Shown here: piece by piece, positions 2,273 through 20,921 of the stretch | Layout: every line of letters begins with the position of its first letter | Position numbering within the stretch: position 1 is the first letter of the stretch | Origin: Polymyxa betae A26-41 | Taxonomy: Eukaryota > Protista > Endomyxa: Phytomyxea | Direction: 5' to 3' | Assembly: GCA_003693705.1 (NCBI GenBank) | Contig: RBZT01000532.1 | Coordinates: 1 to 40,707 of the forward strand | DNA: 40,707 nucleotides | Translations under genes and position numbers: made by a program | Notes under the pieces: generated by a model | Database searches by the model: none | What the model was told of the DNA's origin: nothing | What the model saw: the letters and a program-made list of their open reading frames with translations, nothing else

Positions 2273-3411
2273 TCATGCATTCGCAGATAACGAGCTGAAT
2301 TTACATTTGTTTATCTCTCGAGTCGCAGCGACGATTGCATGCTCATTATATCCACAATCGTCTATTATAACAATATTAAAATGCTCAAGAAGCTGTAAAC
2401 TGGAAGAGCATTGCTCGAGAATGAATTCAGGAGCAGTTGAACATAACTTTTTTGAATGCTTTATAATCGAGCTAGCAAGACGAGATGCTATCTCAGAGAG
2501 TGACAATGAAATCAATAACTGTAGAACATGGAGCTTGCTGGAGTTTCTTTGCAGAATTTGATTGATACCATCACTCTTAATGTGTTTGATATTGCTGCTA
2601 TTACTCCAATGAGAATATATACTGTGCCTATCCCAGATATTCTTGAAGATAGCAATCTCATCATGATCGTAAATCAGAACAATTCTCTTACCACTGGCTA
2701 ATAGAGATTCAATAGTTGAACATGGCTGATAATCTCGTTGTATCACATGACTACCCAATAACAATAATAAACAATCGATAATGTAAACATGCTCCTGATC
2801 GTTTGGGCATCGAGTGCTGTGTTTAAAATCCACATAAACATGGTTCACATCCAGAATAACCAGCTCAGATGGATAATTCTCGATAAATTCTAGAATTTGT
2901 GCTGTAAATTCTGGCAATGTAATACAGCGTAGGCCATGGCATAAATAAATATGCTTTGATCCAGAATCAAAGCTCAGTCGAACATCGAAATATCGAATTC
3001 CACCGATAAGCTGTTCATAAATCGATAGTTTTTGACACTGTGAACAATGTTAAATCGATTCGAAAAGCAGAATGGACGTACTTTAGCCCAGCGAGTAATA
3101 ATTCTAGAAACAAGCGGTAGATGTGAATATCTACCTAGTGATCGTGGACAATCACCTGCTGGTTGATTACAGCGGGGTCCAATAGCATAAGAACCTGAAT
3201 TATGGCTGCCTGGGATAGCGACTTTATTCAGAGGCAAATGTCGAATGAAGTCCAGATCGTCCAACATCCACGTCGTATGATCTGATACCATATCACGACG
3301 AGATATCGGACGAGATATCGGAAGCGACTTGGTGAAACTATGTAGAAGTGATAATGAAAACCATAATGTTAATATTATGATTGAGACATTTGTTATAATG
3401 ACATTCACCAT
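2273..3411 (-). CDS. PI-PLC X-domain protein (PLCXD family), with N-terminal signal/anchor
   Basis: Motif LPLNKVAIPGSHNSGSY. After intron 3038-3081 it reads CQKLSIYEQLIGGIRYFDVRL...YLCHG, then FIENYPSELVILDVNH and a C-terminal NIVIIDD. Hydrophobic N-terminus. Confidence 0.9.
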
Positions 3412-3606: not shown

Positions 3607-3947
3607 GTTGATTAGTGATGAGGAAACCGTTTCTTAGCCCAATCTTCGTATAGCGATACAGGTTGAAGCCATGACTATATCACAATCAGCTGATTATCTC
3701 GAACGCCACATCCAGCTAGCAATCAGAACGGTAACGACCCAATAAATAATCACAACCAGACCATTCCCATTATACAGCTTCATGGTTTATATCATAAACA
3801 AATCGTTTTTTGAAAAACCGGAGAATCAATCGACCTGCAGCAATATGTTGTTGCTTAGAATTGAATGAGTCATGAATATCGGAACGAACGAATCATGGAA
3901 GATTGCAAGTTCAATCCTGATTGGCATAATTCTAATTATACGATATT

Positions 3948-4124
3948 ATGATCATGATTCAATTATTCCGAATATTATTGATTGTAATGGCTATAACAGC
4001 AATGTTGATCAGTTCCTGGGAACATGGTCTTGGTGCTGGACGTCTCTTCCGTCAGAATCGCCTCAAATTCCAACTTCTACAATCTGAATCTGATCAAGAG
4101 CAAGTAATCGTGACCGAACCCTGA
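3948..4124 (+). CDS. Small secreted peptide, 58 aa (not in ORF track)
   Basis: MIMIQLFRILLIVMAITAMLISSWEHGLGAGRLFRQNRLKFQLLQSESDQEQVIVTEP*. Signal peptide-like N-terminus; the mature start resembles the 4893..5153 product. Confidence 0.65.
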   Translation: MIMIQLFRILLIVMAITAMLISSWEHGLGAGRLFRQNRLKFQLLQSESDQEQVIVTEP

Positions 4125-4892
4125 AGACAATAATGTCATGTCCTCCCTGCCTGTCATCTCTATTTATTGCCATAACAATACAGAGCAGCATAAACCCATG
4201 GATAATCTCATCTTCGCACTTGATTGTATTCAATGTTGAAATTGTTTTAAGCTGTCAATGCCCTAAAACCGTCTACTCGTACTTCTAAACTGCCTGGATT
4301 TAGAAAGTTGCGAAATGAAGATTTGGCTCGGCTTTGTTATGGATACGACCGAGCCAATTGGGCGGGTGCCTAGGCACCTTACCTTATTGAGGCTCTCTTA
4401 GGTACTGTATATAGGCTCACCATCTATCGAAACGGGTGAAATACTGTAAAGCCCCGAAATCGTTAGTAGGGCTCTGGAATCTATTTGTCCTAATACGCTT
4501 GTTCAATTGAAATAAATTGCAGAAAAGCTAATTAGAAGCAGTATATGCTGATGTTATCAATAGACAGAGGCAATTATTGTCATGAAGCTCAATACAAACT
4601 ATGCCATGATCGACGTTCACTAGAAACCATGCTTAAATACGGTGTTGATCTTATCGTTTAGTAGACGTGATGTCAGCAAGCTTGCATTGATGGAAGCCAG
4701 GATATCATCACCCGGGGCCGTCTAAGACGAAAGCAAAACCATAACAAGAGTCAGCAATAGACAGACAATCGGAACGAAATAAAACGAAAGGAATGCCTGA
4801 TTGAGTCAACTAACATCGAGTCACCTTCCGATTATGATCTATTTCATAAGCATTCGATTCCTTCATTACGAAAAACGTTTGACACCCCTCGA

Positions 4893-5153
4893 ATGATGAA
4901 ATCGACAATGATGTTGTCCCTGCTGGCATTTGTTGCAGCATTATCTGTACAGGCGTGGGATCATGATTTCGATCATGCTGCTCATGAACATGGCATCGGT
5001 CTGGGCAACTTATTCCATCCCAATCATGTAGCATTCGGCCATGAGCATCATGATTTCAGACATCACCATCATCATGGACATGGTGGAGGTGAAGGCTGGG
5101 AGGACGATGATGAAGAAAACGATTGGCATGGACACGAGCATGACGATTTTTGA
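4893..5153 (+). CDS. Small secreted His/Asp/Glu-rich protein, 86 aa
   Basis: Clear signal peptide ending SVQA. Mature part WDHDFDHAAHEHGIGLGNLFHPNHVAFGHEHHDFRHHHHHGHGGGEGWEDDDEENDWHGHEHDDF. AATAAA follows shortly after the stop. Confidence 0.85.
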   Translation: MMKSTMMLSLLAFVAALSVQAWDHDFDHAAHEHGIGLGNLFHPNHVAFGHEHHDFRHHHHHGHGGGEGWEDDDEENDWHGHEHDDF

Positions 5154-5178
5154 GCCTTAACCGTTTGAGCCTTAACCG
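5149..5178. repeat. Perfect 15-bp tandem duplication spanning the stop codon
   Basis: TTTGAGCCTTAACCG x2. Confidence 0.9.
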
Positions 5179-5357
5179 ATAATAAAATATTGTCGAATCC
5201 AATACCGTTCCAATAAGCTGGAATTCATGAGAGTAGCGAATATTAGGTGCTGTATGATACAGCTAAGCTCTGATAATCAATGATATCAACTCCCATCTAA
5301 TAAACAATAGCCCGAATCTTGACCAGATATTAAACATCATGTACAATGCAGTTGTAT

Positions 5358-6440
5358 TTAGCAGCTTTCTGTCCTGAGACTAATTGGGCCTGATGACTTC
5401 CTTGCAAATGTTAAGTAGCCAGTATGACCTCTCATACTAGCAAATGACTTGGAGACGACATGGCCGCTAGATGGAGATTCCTGACGTGTTCGCTTTCCAG
5501 TGGGCACTATGACAGGTTCAGGTGCGAACTTCGGCAGGTTCGCAACATGAGCGTCGAATGTTCGGCGAAGAATTTCCATCGTGATCACCTCGACGAATCC
5601 TTGCTCGCGTAAGGTATCGCAGGTATGCTGGACCTGCTCGATACAGGGCGAAAACGAGCAGATTCGCCCGAAAGGACGAAGGATAAGATTGGCATGGGAG
5701 ATTGCATCCCAAGGTGATGGAAGGTCAAGGAAAACGGCATCGGCTTGTTCTAATTGTTCGTGTCCAAATCCTGATTGCAAAACATTTCGATGAGTGCAGG
5801 TTACGAGATGCTGCAGCTGCATGAGAGCGATATCATGTAGAGCGCTTTCATGACGCTGCTGATTGAATTCAAATGTGAATACATGACCAGTAGGGGCTAT
5901 AGCTCTTGCTAATGATGTTGTCAGAGAACAGGAACCGGTCCCAGATTCAGCTACAATCGATCCAGGTTTCAGATCCAGATGAAGCAACACCATGGAGATA
6001 TCGGCGTCGTACAGAATCTGAGTTCGATGGTTGAGACTCAAAGTCCATAGTTCAGGTGTTGGGCTTAATAACACAATCCATCCAGCATGGACAGGATCAC
6101 CACGCTTCGGGCGTCGCGCTTGAGAGACGCCTTTTCGGGCTCGAACCATGGACCCGTATACTTTACCGACAAAATCATCATGACTAGATCATATTGATAC
6201 GAATGTTAGAAACAAGATGTAATAGACGTACTGGAAATGCCCTTTTCTAGATGAATAAATCTGACCGCGACTGACAGTGACGAACTGCATACTGGCCTGG
6301 CTCTCGTAGAGGATCACCAGATCTCCATACGATATGATTGGTTTCGTACATGCAGACTTGGTTTTGGACCACAGATCCCAATCAGGAGCTCCTGGCTTAG
6401 TGACAGGACCTGATATTGAACTGAACACCACCGGAGCCAT
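5358..6440 (-). CDS. TRM61: tRNA (adenine58-N1)-methyltransferase catalytic subunit
   Basis: Motifs PTPELWTLSLNHRTQILY, ESGTGSCSL, DAVFLDLPSPW, CSFSPCIEQV, GHTGYLTFA. One intron at 6184-6231. Confidence 0.95.
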
Positions 6441-7184
6441 ACAGCAAGAAAATTCCAGTTGAAAACCCCAAAAAAACTACAGATTCGGTGTGAGCGCAAT
6501 TTTTACAAATTCTCATAGACTGAATATTAAGCGCAAAAAATGTCATAGATGAGGAATACAACGAATTTGATGCGAAAAGAACGAAAGGTTATCTGTGAAC
6601 ACTGATTAAGTCTAGATATGCAGCAAGGTCGACGGGAATGGCATCTCCAAATCCAACTTTTTCAGAATTTAGGGAGCCCACGAGGATGGTAAATGCAACC
6701 TCAGAAAAAACAAGAGCCACTATACAATCCTCTCTCAAACCTTCTTGAATCGATTAAATCGAACAATAGGATTTCGGGACGTTTTATCATTGGGGTTTCG
6801 GGTTTTCGAAACAGGTTTCCTTGACGTTCCTAGCTTATAACGGTTCGTTGCAATAATAGCCTTGAAAACGGAGAAGGCCTGAGGCTGCACATTGCAGAAA
6901 ATACAATGGACGCCACAAACGCCAGCCAGGAACGAGATTGACTTTATCATTGGTCGATATAAGAGGGAAAGTAAGTGAAGTGTGTTTCATCATTATGTCC
7001 GGTTGTCTGCTACCGAATATCTCCTTCGGCAATTGCTATAGCGCCACCGGACCTCTGATAAGCCTTTGACGGCTTCAGCGACCTACCACACCGCCTCTAG
7101 CAACACAACAGCAATCAGCGATTCCCAATCATCGCAAGCCCGACAAAACAATTTCCATTTCTAAGTCAGCGGGTTTGGCTGTCT

Positions 7185-13177: not shown

Positions 13178-13266
13178 TTAACTCATTAAACATCTCTTTA
13201 AGAAACTGGAAAGTTAACGACGTGAGTCAACGGTGGATCTGAATTGCCCATTAACGTAAATGTCCT

Positions 13267-15279
13267 ATGCCCTTTAATGCCAGGCTTTTGTGTCTAACCT
13301 TATTGAGCTATGTCGTATCTATTTGGGGCCAGCAACAGCAGTTTGTTCCTATATATTTAACGAACCAATCGCCTCAAGCAAATCCGGCAACTGCTTCTCC
13401 ATGGCAGCAAGCGCCATTGTGGACGAATGCATTGTCCGGAGCCTACCCAGCACCGTCACAATATATTGCAGAGAATCCGAACCCTGCTCATACTGCAGGG
13501 GGCGTTCCGGATCCGATTACGCACGCTGGTGGCGTTGCCTTAAATCTTGTTGTGAATGCTGGTCCAGGCTCATCTCCTGCTCCTGCGTTTTCATCGGCAC
13601 CAGCTTCGAACCAAGCTCAGCTGCCGATTTCGACACCAGCGGGAAGCAGTGCCCAGAGCCAGCCAGCTGGTTTGGCCACAGCGGGCGACCATAGCAGAAG
13701 TGATCCAAATGGAGAAAAAGCATCACCGGCACGGAAAAATGATTTACCAGATCAGATTGTGATTGACGGCCATTCCTATAAATTGAATGATGGCGAAACT
13801 CTAGTGGTACAAGAGAAAGAAAAGAGGAAACGTCATGACGACGATGATCGGAAACATCGTCATGATGATGACGATGAGGATCGACATCGGCACACAGAGC
13901 GCGATCGCAAAGACGACGACAATGAGAAGAAGAGCCGGAAGAAGAGCGACGACTCTGATGATGACAAATCCAAAAAAAAGGTAGACTCTAAGCCGAAGAA
14001 ACCGATTGCCAAGTTACCAGAACTACCCTCGACCCCTGAAATCCCTTCAGTGCCCACATTGCAGACGCAGGCGAATTTAGAGCCGACAAAACCGCCAATA
14101 TATCCGGGAGAAAATGTAGAACTTGCAAAGGTGATCGCTGCGACGACGAATACGTCCGCCCCAATACCATCACCAGCTGCCGCCGTCGAGGCCATCAACC
14201 CAGTAAACGGTCCAGAAGTAATCAAAGCATCGCCTGTGCAAACCGGCAGCGGCACCCATCAGGAGCCAACGTCGACTATACGGGAACAGGCAGCGGTTGC
14301 AGCAATATCACCTGATGCAGTGAAACTCCAAGTTAATGGCACAGAGGCGAGCACAGACCCATCTATAATGACGACAGAAATGGGAGGTGCCCTACAAGTG
14401 CCAAATCCAGACTCTGTATCTGGGTCGCAGCCCATGATTCAAGTCGCTACATTGGCCCCGCTATCATTACCACAGAATCCAGGACAATGGGCATCACCTC
14501 TGCCCAGAGATCAGCGATTCGAGACGGCCAAGGCCACGCTAGCAACGCATCCTGATCAACGGGCGGGATCGGCAACATCTGCCCGTCCTGGCCAGATGCC
14601 GGATCTGCCAAACCTGCCGCCTGGAATGCAGTCGTTCCATCAAAGACCGGATGCGGTTAAAAAACCACCATCGCCTCCTAGTGCACCCATGCCTAAACCG
14701 ATGATGCCCAAATCCAAGGTATAACCATGCAATAGACTTCCGGTTCCATCACATTGAAAACCACAGGCAGGTTCTTTAAATAATTCGAATCCACTTGCAG
14801 TTCCAGGTACCAAAACGCCAAATGTTCCTCCAGTTGTGACGGCTCCAGGCGTAGGCTCGGTTGCCAATAAATCAACCGCTCATAGACCAGAGCCAGTTCC
14901 TGCTATACTTGTGCCAGAGGCAACACCAACCGTTGTCGATACTCCAGCTCCGACTATAGCTCCGACCCCAAGCCCTGATCCAACTCCCGAACCGAAGAAG
15001 AAGTCCAAATGGGCGTTCGGGCATGGACCCGAATATAACTACGAACCAAGCACTGGCAGAAAGCCATCAGACCAGACAAATGGGGACCCGTTTGGGAAAA
15101 AGAATAATGACAAGGAACAACCAGATGACAAGGGCAAGAAAAAGAAAGATGGTAAAAAGAAGGGCGAGGATGGTAAAAAGTCCAAAGACGCGAAGCCAGC
15201 AGCAAGTGGATCAGCAGATCAGAACAAAGCAGTTACCGATATGTTCTCCAACATCATGGGCAAAATCAAATTCAAATAA
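13267..15279 (+). CDS. Secreted Pro-rich protein with Lys/Asp/Arg-rich charged blocks
   Basis: Signal peptide MPFNARLLCLTLLSYVVSIWG. The 485-aa ORF joins via intron 14719-14766 to the 14836..15279 frame. Mostly low complexity. Confidence 0.8.
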
Positions 15280-19700: not shown

Positions 19701-20921
19701 ACAGAGACCCTTGAACTGGTTTGTAGAAGAGATCGAATCTTCCATCGGCAGCGATGAACCCGGACCCTACTTATGTGAAGCTATCATCAGGTAAACAAAC
19801 TTTGAAAATGGCGCCTGTATGACTAGCAACTGCAGAGTATTTGGCAGTGAAGGTTTAAATCTAATTCAATCGCGCTGGCCGGATGTCCTTGCTCGTAATT
19901 AAGTCCCATACAGCTGAACTGATCAGAACTGATATGTGAGAAGAAGACTGGACTGGCGTGGTTTGGGCTCGCATCATTCGAGTATTCGGGCTAAAGAAAG
20001 CGTCGTATAATGGTCCGTTAAGGGCCAACATCCTCAACGTGCTTTTAACGCAACAGAGCAGCATCCAGGCGCTACGAATTCTTTACAAAAGGTGGTTGAT
20101 TCTTGTTAATGTCACGCTCTAAAATTGCTCTACAGTGTGATTGAAGGAAAGATGACATCGAATTCGTACACATTCCCTGCTTTGATTCGAGCGCTCAGTC
20201 GTAATGGCTGCAACCCTGACGATTTGCGGATATTATTCCAAAGAATGCTTGAATTTGGCTATGGGCTAAACTCAGCTGTCGTTTCGTCCATGATCAATGC
20301 ACTCGGAAAACATTATGCGATTGCCCAGTGCCAAGAAGTTTTTGATCTGGCTCGAAGGGAGTGCTTGCCCCTAACCGAATCAGTTTATACTGCCATGATA
20401 AGGGCACATGCTCGATTAGGTTCGCTTTATTCAAGATCTCACTTTCTGTGGTAAATCTCGATCTAGGGGATATCCACGCTTGTCAATTGCTACTTGATCA
20501 AATGAGACAGCGACATGTTTGCCCAACTGTCAATACTTTCAATGCATTATTAACCGCATGTAGAGTTAAGGGCAATTTGTCCTTGGCGCATAGTAAAACT
20601 AGAATCCCATTTTGCCAATACATGTGACTGATGATGTGAGCCAGGAATGCTATCGCTTCTGAACGATCTGCAACTGCAGCCCTCAATTGGCACTTATCAT
20701 GAATTACTACGCTTGTATGCATCCAAAGGATACATTCAACAATGCCAAGATATCATCAACCATATTCGTAATCAATGTGAGTTTGAACACGATCGCATCA
20801 CTTACGGCCTTTACAAAAAGTGAGTCATTTTTTCGTACTTCAATACCTCTCTAACGTTTGCAGAGCAAAAAATGTATCCAGACAACGTTCATGTCTCATT
20901 GTAAGCCGACCAGACACGTGA
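16718..20921 (+). CDS. Pentatricopeptide repeat (PPR) protein, many exons
   Basis: Repeated P-type PPR motifs: GITPTTVSMNVLINALCKCGEVQRALQIL, PDLFTFAPLLDAL, PNLTCFNILIHAYCK, DTVTFNTLL, VYTAMIRAHARLG, PTVNTFNALLTAC. True 5' end uncertain, probably about 16560-16660. Confidence 0.85.

Follow-up and report, generated by a model that had tools for sequence, protein, structure and literature searches.

Two small, probably secreted paralogous peptides of Polymyxa betae, one of them rich in histidine

Two short open reading frames (ORFs) lie 769 nt apart on the forward (+) strand of the window, the term used here for the whole stretch of 40,707 nt of Polymyxa betae DNA that was analysed. The first of them, ORF1, is overlapped by an ORF of 71 aa (3872-4087) that is read in a different frame, and the second, ORF2, lies downstream of it; both were found where the original prediction had placed them, as was the overlap. 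The GC content is 38-50% in the window and 45.1% in the P. betae draft assembly, which comprises 1,001 contigs and 27,085,946 bp (PMC6328671). The features of the locus are the following.

3866-3872, + strand: TGAGTCA box of ORF1, 82 nt 5′ of the ATG and about 47 nt 5′ of the first base of the RNA contig
3919-4255, strand not given by the contig: unspliced RNA contig spanning the whole of ORF1 (run X11, 337 nt, no differences, depth 16)
3948-4124, + strand: ORF1, 58 aa, consisting of a leader (M1-S23), W24, the core and a short acidic tail
3948-4016, + strand: predicted signal peptide of ORF1, with Arg8, a 13-residue hydrophobic run and I-S-S ahead of Trp (hydropathy; -3/-1 rule by eye)
4020-4070, + strand: conserved core of ORF1 (E25-F41), immediately 3′ of W24 (pairwise alignment and genome motif pattern)
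4357-4487, no strand: copy of a dispersed repeat (about 135 bp) lying between ORF1 and ORF2 and belonging to neither gene
4802-4808, + strand: TGAGTCA box of ORF2, 91 nt 5′ of the ATG and about 72 nt 5′ of the first base of the RNA contig
4880-5208, strand not given by the contig: unspliced, very deep RNA contig spanning the whole of ORF2 (4880-5208 in run X1, 4883-5204 in run X9)
4893-5153, + strand: ORF2, 86 aa, consisting of a leader, W22, a short His/Asp stretch, the core and a His/Asp/Glu/Gly tail
4893-4955, + strand: predicted signal peptide of ORF2, with Lys3, a hydrophobic run of about 14 residues and V-Q-A ahead of Trp (hydropathy; -3/-1 rule by eye)
4986-5036, + strand: conserved core of ORF2 (E32-F48) (pairwise alignment and genome motif pattern)
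5037-5150, + strand: His/Asp/Glu/Gly-rich tail of ORF2, predicted to be disordered (composition and AlphaFold2)

The repeat in the spacer has at least 32 copies on other contigs, with 72-91% identity, and at 4471 and 4487 RNA contigs leave it and continue in unrelated sequence. A search of Rfam over 3700-5400 returned no real match.

The resemblance between the two products had been described as a gapless alignment over a 17-residue core, E-H-G-[LI]-G-x-G-x-L-F-x-x-N-x-[LV]-x-F, and this alignment was confirmed, with nine identical and two conservative positions. Arg in the core of ORF1 is aligned with Asn or His of ORF2, also as noticed before. BLASTP between the two products gives E = 4e-6, and the mature parts reach an ungapped BLOSUM62 score of 53, well above that of shuffled controls (n = 5000; mean 19.4, sd 3.6, maximum 40), none of which attained it (0/5000; z about 9). 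When the 193 ATG-initiated ORFs of the window were compared with the core of ORF2, ORF1 scored far above any other, the runner-up reaching 31. At the level of the genome, a degenerate DNA pattern for EHGxGxGxLF has three sites in 27 Mb and none in a reversed control, and the site outside the window is a further copy of the motif on another contig, C455. A looser pattern, G-x-L-F-xx-N-xxx-F, has 53 matches in the genome, but HGxG lies upstream only in the two of the window; it was absent from all 51 of the others when these were read in frame (0/51). A loose pattern match elsewhere in the genome, on contig C462, was considered as a family member and rejected; it lies in a protein whose Gly-rich repeats, judged by eye, resemble MORN repeats. 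Searches of the P. betae genome with single proteins were too insensitive to connect ORF1 with ORF2, a connection that was made by a profile and by the DNA patterns.

Both ORFs are short and large genomes do yield chance matches to short motifs, so that a fortuitous resemblance between two random ORFs has to be considered. Nevertheless, the shuffle and ORF-partner scores, together with the count of pattern sites in the genome, already refute this explanation, and the leader, the Trp, the strand, the adjacency, the promoter box and transcription are all common to both ORFs; what probability it retains is negligible. At the same time, ORF1 and ORF2 have no alignable DNA in common. That the leader, the Trp and the core nonetheless stand in one frame in each of them implies long coding constraint. 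ORF1 and ORF2 are true paralogs. Of the tandem family of secreted peptides that had been suggested, a real pair of leader-bearing, transcribed paralogs therefore stands, but not an expanded family, since in the whole genome only two genes of this kind are intact and the one other copy is a broken relic.

Both leaders have the n-region and h-region of a cleavable signal peptide, and their hydropathy windows peak at 2.6-2.8 and drop after about residue 20. Judged by eye, V-Q-A|W in ORF2 and I-S-S|W in ORF1 fit the -3/-1 rule, although for ORF1 a cut after Ala18 would be possible as well. [quoted passage not shown] In histatin 5 and serum albumin, the ATCUN arrangement consists of a free N-terminus with His as its third residue (PMC8391865). 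An X-X-His end on both peptides is thus inferred and depends on the cleavage site, as it would be lost from ORF1 upon cleavage after Ala18.

Runs X9 and X11 represent RNA, because neighbouring genes appear in them with their introns removed (3038-3081, 6184-6231, 6490-6548). When RNA coverage was checked, as the original prediction had advised, 3948-4124 proved to be transcribed, the exact, unspliced X11 contig over ORF1 being short and separate from the contigs of its neighbours. On all three counts that had been named as grounds for refuting the original prediction, namely no transcription of 3948-4124, no further copy of the motif and a score no better than that of shuffles, the results went the other way. 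Expression of ORF2 is of another order: with contig depth taken as a rough measure, its contig has a depth of 1209 in X9, compared with 35-65 for neighbouring contigs, and a summed depth of about 900 in X11, compared with 24-43 for the neighbours. Of a 5.5-kb stretch around it, nothing but the ORF2 transcript was found in the root metatranscriptome X1, and sampled words of this stretch were matched in runs from five studies. The contigs give neither the strand nor the true ends of the transcripts; in each of them, the + strand ORF is the sole ORF that fills the contig. ORF1 and ORF2 are, then, transcribed as short unspliced units, and the RNA of ORF2 is very abundant in infected roots. By the crude measure of contig depth, ORF2 is overwhelmingly the main expressed member, expression of ORF1 being modest.

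Upstream of both ORFs, and in the same orientation, lies the sequence TGAGTCA, beyond which their upstream regions do not align. There are only four such sites in the 40.7-kb window. Three of them are found at -82 (ORF1), -91 (ORF2) and -44 relative to a third gene, a leader-bearing low-complexity ORF of 485 aa with a His/Asp-rich stretch (13267-14724), while the fourth is at 20821. Three of the four boxes of the window precede, by no more than 100 nt, a leader-bearing ORF of the same strand, an arrangement with P of about 5e-5 under a crude definition of leader-bearing ORFs, the target being the 2.3% of strand-positions that immediately precede them. Genome-wide, there are 2475 sites in 27.1 Mb, or about 0.009 per 100 nt. 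Going by their sequence, both ORFs can be placed with a putative class of TGAGTCA-box secreted-protein genes, in which an AP-1-like box lies just upstream of a leader-bearing ORF.

The further copy of the motif (C455:76084-76343) shares 81% DNA identity with 3938-4205 of the window. Compared with ORF1, it has AGG at the position of the start codon, a 4-nt gap between leader and core and an 8-nt gap within the tail. Its leader is still hydrophobic when read in the old frame, which indicates that the ancestor of this copy and ORF1 had the layout of ORF1, and it also reads W-E-H. There is no TGAGTCA box near it. It sits 3′ of several short upstream ORFs. Run X9 includes an RNA contig with its sequence (loose end at 3999), and it is probably transcribed as a 3′ portion of the RNA of an upstream gene. 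We read it as a frame-broken, promoter-less relic of ORF1. A retroposed copy was also considered, in keeping with the missing promoter, but it has no poly-A tract and the homology stops before the end of the transcript.

Divergence between ORF1 and the relic is uneven. In the block from Met19 to Arg38 (4002-4061), 58 of 60 nt are identical and both changes are synonymous, whereas the rest of the duplicated segment is 16.5% diverged (Fisher P = 0.008, binomial P = 0.0016). This low divergence is compatible both with selection acting on the core and with a tract of gene conversion. The similarity extends beyond the stop codon of ORF1 at about the level of the tail, and includes a perfect 28-nt block. 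A second His-rich ORF near the relic (L010:6930-7145) was examined as a homolog of ORF2, which would have meant that a two-gene block was duplicated, and was rejected, as the similarity is limited to composition. The His/Asp-rich piece upstream of the relic has no significant DNA match in the window.

With regard to the products, the different charged tails that had been described were found, short and acidic in ORF1 and rich in His, Asp, Glu and Gly in ORF2. Cut ahead of Trp, mature ORF2 would have 65 residues, among them 18 His (28%), 17 Asp+Glu (26%) and 10 Gly but no Cys, with a pI of 5.3; ORF2 contains three H-E-H triads, a single Arg and no HEXXH. Mature ORF1 would have 35 residues with a single His, and has no His-rich tail. 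The AlphaFold2 model, built on a three-row alignment, has the leader as its only confident helix (mean pLDDT 58.5), and beyond the core of ORF2 the mean pLDDT is about 47-56 per 10-residue block. These values fit a mature ORF2 that is a disordered peptide.

Searches for relatives outside this genome were negative. A word-index search with ORF2 found none, and an exhaustive profile search of 1.84 billion representative proteins gave no match at E <= 0.001. In JGI metagenomes, none of 578 pattern matches was confirmed by tblastn. No Pfam family was matched at E <= 10 by ORF1, ORF2 or the ORF of the C455 copy, no chain among PDB sequences was matched at E <= 10, and the ESM Atlas features gave nothing for ORF1 or ORF2. 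The core, which had been called unrecognised, thus has no match in any database searched. In exact-product look-ups, neither product is recorded as a called gene among the records searched, from which those of this genome and of close relatives may be missing; small ORFs often are not called. Two known families were considered and rejected. ORF1 has R-L-F-R, with Phe where the RxLR-dEER effectors require Leu, and ORF2 has N-L-F-H there; as to the MORN repeat (PF02493), the spacing of the core is off by two residues, the core is present in a single copy, and Pfam gave no match at E <= 10. In the literature searched, no paper was found that links plasmodiophorids with histidine-rich proteins, and the core strings of ORF1 and ORF2 were not found in the text supplements of a plasmodiophorid secretome paper, one of them truncated, which may contain no sequences (PMC12503489). 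Provisionally, the family appears to be restricted to the Polymyxa lineage, and, within the searches made, three features are new: the motif of the core, a Trp-X-His head that is conserved, and the association with the TGAGTCA-box gene set.

The explanation that we favour, and regard as probable though well short of assured, is that ORF1 and ORF2 are the two surviving members of a small secreted-peptide family, apparently restricted to Polymyxa, and that ORF2 binds metals. One part of it is considerably firmer, namely that both ORFs are real, expressed and secreted paralogs, which we hold to be very likely. That metal binding is the main activity of ORF2 is a more tentative proposal, nearly as probable as its opposite, and is made because of the composition of the peptide and by analogy with the histatins. 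It is preferred over the effector, spore-wall and signalling roles because of the composition and disorder of ORF2 and the predicted W-[DE]-H ends.

According to this proposal, the leaders would route both products into the secretory pathway and would be cut just ahead of Trp, and the free W-E-H and W-D-H ends would form X-X-His ATCUN sites. The Gly/hydrophobic core would be the common working module, most likely a surface for binding or self-association, and the disordered tail of ORF2 would contribute many weak sites for zinc, copper or nickel. Outside the parasite cell, ORF2, as an abundant peptide, might buffer or scavenge metals at the host interface, or else cross-link material of the wall or spore ball. 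ORF1 would be a short paralog in which the His-rich tail is lacking but leader, core and Trp-X-His end are retained.

Several other explanations have to be weighed against this one. Judging by its sequence, ORF1 could be recently dead or non-coding, as it is short, its tail is not conserved, its similarity to the relic continues past the stop codon and its only close relative is broken. In that case only ORF2 would work, and ORF1 would be a transcribed, still-open remnant of an old duplicate, comparable to the C455 copy. Its 58 codons without a His-rich tail agree with this, as do its RNA depth (about 16, with ORF2 at about 900 to 1200), the tail-level similarity with its perfect 28-nt block beyond the stop codon, and the presence in RNA of the frame-broken copy itself. 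However, start codon, leader, Trp and core of ORF1 all stand in a single frame in spite of the absence of alignable DNA in common with ORF2, which implies long coding constraint, and its core block differs from the relic by synonymous changes only. Besides, ORF1 has its own TGAGTCA box at a distance like that of ORF2, where the relic has none nearby, and its own short RNA contig apart from those of its neighbours. On balance, we consider loss of ORF1 unlikely, though it deserves to be taken seriously.

Two further alternatives concern what the peptides do. The peptides might be structural, a His-rich, metal-cross-linked component of the wall of the resting spore or spore ball, whose core drives self-assembly. 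This overlaps with the main reading, and it suits ORF2 as a peptide that is very abundant, rich in His and Gly, predicted to be disordered and devoid of Cys, as well as the occurrence of the same box ahead of the 485-aa secreted low-complexity ORF with its His/Asp-rich stretch. Mature ORF2, however, has only 65 residues and no repeats, it lacks the Tyr, Lys or Cys usual for covalent cross-linking, and the infected roots that gave the RNA runs are of unspecified stage. We judge a wall role to be about as improbable as the loss of ORF1. Alternatively, the peptides could be host-directed effectors or mimics of host peptide signals, with a processed 17-residue core acting on a plant target or receptor. 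Small size, predicted secretion, lineage restriction and high in planta expression all agree with such a role, as does a conserved core directly 3′ of the leader, with basic residues around it in ORF1 (R-L-F-R, N-R-L-K). But neither ORF has an RxLR motif, the basic sites of ORF1 are not kept in ORF2, and there is no Pfam family at E <= 10; nor, to our knowledge, is any of the CLE, CEP, RGF, IDA/PIP, PSY or RALF consensus motifs matched by the core. This role appears distinctly less probable than the other two alternatives.

Polymyxa betae is a plasmodiophorid that carries beet necrotic yellow vein virus (rhizomania) and cannot be cultured, and we know of almost no molecule secreted by it that has a known role. 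Plant parasites commonly have small secreted proteins that are orphan, and ORF1 and ORF2 are of this familiar kind, ORF2 being rich in His; the family amounts to two genes and one relic. ORF2 is nevertheless a convenient subject, as it is apparently unannotated, has very high RNA levels in planta and is short enough for chemical synthesis, and the prediction to which it gives rise, that it binds metals by way of an X-X-His end and a His-rich tail, is simple and can be tested. Its RNA is detectable in field root metatranscriptomes and could mark infection, and the TGAGTCA box that it has in common with further secreted-protein genes offers an entry point to gene regulation in P. betae. In its most far-reaching form, which we offer as speculation and think unlikely to hold in full, the interpretation would be that of a P. 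betae peptide family unknown elsewhere, which combines a W-[DE]-H copper/nickel end with a new Gly/hydrophobic module. ORF2 would then be among the most abundant products that the parasite secretes in the root. As the equivalent, in a protist, of histatins or HRP2, it would control copper or zinc, and through them redox chemistry, where host and parasite meet, and it could be a sensitive marker of infection by the rhizomania vector.

Among known systems, the closest in working principle are the histatins, His-rich peptides of human saliva such as histatin 5, which have an amino-terminal X-X-His copper/nickel site and further His-based zinc sites (PMC8391865). They are small, secreted, His-rich and disordered, as ORF2 is predicted to be, and their X-X-His end would be matched by W-D-H in ORF2 and W-E-H in ORF1 if these were cut ahead of Trp. 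By contrast, histatins are cationic and ORF2 is acidic, there is no sequence similarity, histatins have no Gly/hydrophobic core, and ORF2 has no HEXXH. The likeness would be one of working principle only, not of membership. HRP2 of Plasmodium and Hpn of Helicobacter, examples of His-rich proteins that intracellular parasites export or that serve in metal handling, are very abundant, of low complexity and bind metals or haem, and HRP2 serves as an infection marker. Its use as an abundant marker is paralleled by the detection of ORF2 RNA in root metatranscriptomes, but HRP2 and Hpn have repeats or long His runs, no conserved core outside the His residues and no homology to ORF1 or ORF2. The core also recalls the MORN repeat (PF02493) in its W...HGxG...N...[YF]-G flavour, although that repeat forms intracellular arrays, whereas ORF1 and ORF2 each have a single motif behind a predicted signal peptide. 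Finally, supplement 1 of the secretome paper reports that orphans make up about 65% of the secretome predicted for P. betae (PMC12503489). With the small secreted candidate effectors of plasmodiophorids, ORF1 and ORF2 have in common a predicted signal peptide, small size and the absence of a known domain; to these they add a conserved core, a predicted X-X-His end and a common promoter box.

His-rich open reading occurs on both sides of the frame-broken ORF1-like relic on C455, another contig of the P. betae genome, of which L010 is a stretch:

C455:75886-76079 (L010:5887-6080), directly upstream of the relic: open stretch of about 30 codons rich in His/Asp/Glu
C455:76891-77144 (L010:6892-7145), on the relic's downstream side, about 600 nt away: overlapping ORF pair

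The upstream stretch is flanked by two 30-nt direct repeats, 87% identical and 164 nt apart, and resembles a small duplicated or inserted segment. In the downstream pair, an ATG ORF whose signal-peptide-like start ends in ...C-S-W overlaps a 71-aa His/Asp-rich ORF one frame over, and together they could represent a secreted His-rich gene that has been frame-shifted or mis-assembled. The His-rich ORF resembles ORF2, the 86-aa His-rich peptide of the window, in composition only, and against ZIP transporters this region matches their His-rich loop weakly, at chance level (E = 0.76).

Within the window, RNA contigs bear out three short introns in genes neighbouring ORF1 and ORF2; the list also gives three ORFs:

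3038-3081: 44-nt intron, gene for a leader-bearing protein (hydrophobic N-terminus) without Pfam match
6184-6231: 48-nt intron, GCD14/TRM61 tRNA methyltransferase gene
6490-6548: 59-nt intron, + strand unit (strand from the GT..AG ends)
13223-14724: 485-aa ORF whose start clearly resembles a signal peptide
2974-3411, - strand: leader-bearing ORF whose product has a PISR-PISR micro-duplication
3694-3783, - strand: 29-aa ORF, nearly all one hydrophobic helix

The 485-aa product is of low complexity, rich in Pro/Ala/Ser with an additional His/Asp/Lys/Arg-rich stretch, and has no match in Pfam; a TGAGTCA box, the promoter word also present upstream of ORF1 and ORF2, lies 44 nt upstream of its ATG. 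At 3297, inside the ORF at 2974-3411, 12 nt present in the assembly and in RNA run X9 are absent from the contigs of RNA run X11. As the same ORF carries the PISR-PISR micro-duplication, this indel, placed at the level of the ORF, may be that duplication differing among isolates. The 29-aa ORF is a candidate membrane micro-protein, and one X11 contig spanning 3498-3774 reaches into it.

The spacer between ORF1 and ORF2 contains one further element:

4357-4487: dispersed repeat copy of about 135 bp (the 'hairpin cluster')

At least 32 copies, many of them partial, are found on other contigs with 72-91% identity. Since RNA contigs leave the repeat at 4471 and 4487 and continue in unrelated sequence, copies of it are transcribed. 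The element has no match in Rfam and looks like a MITE or SINE.
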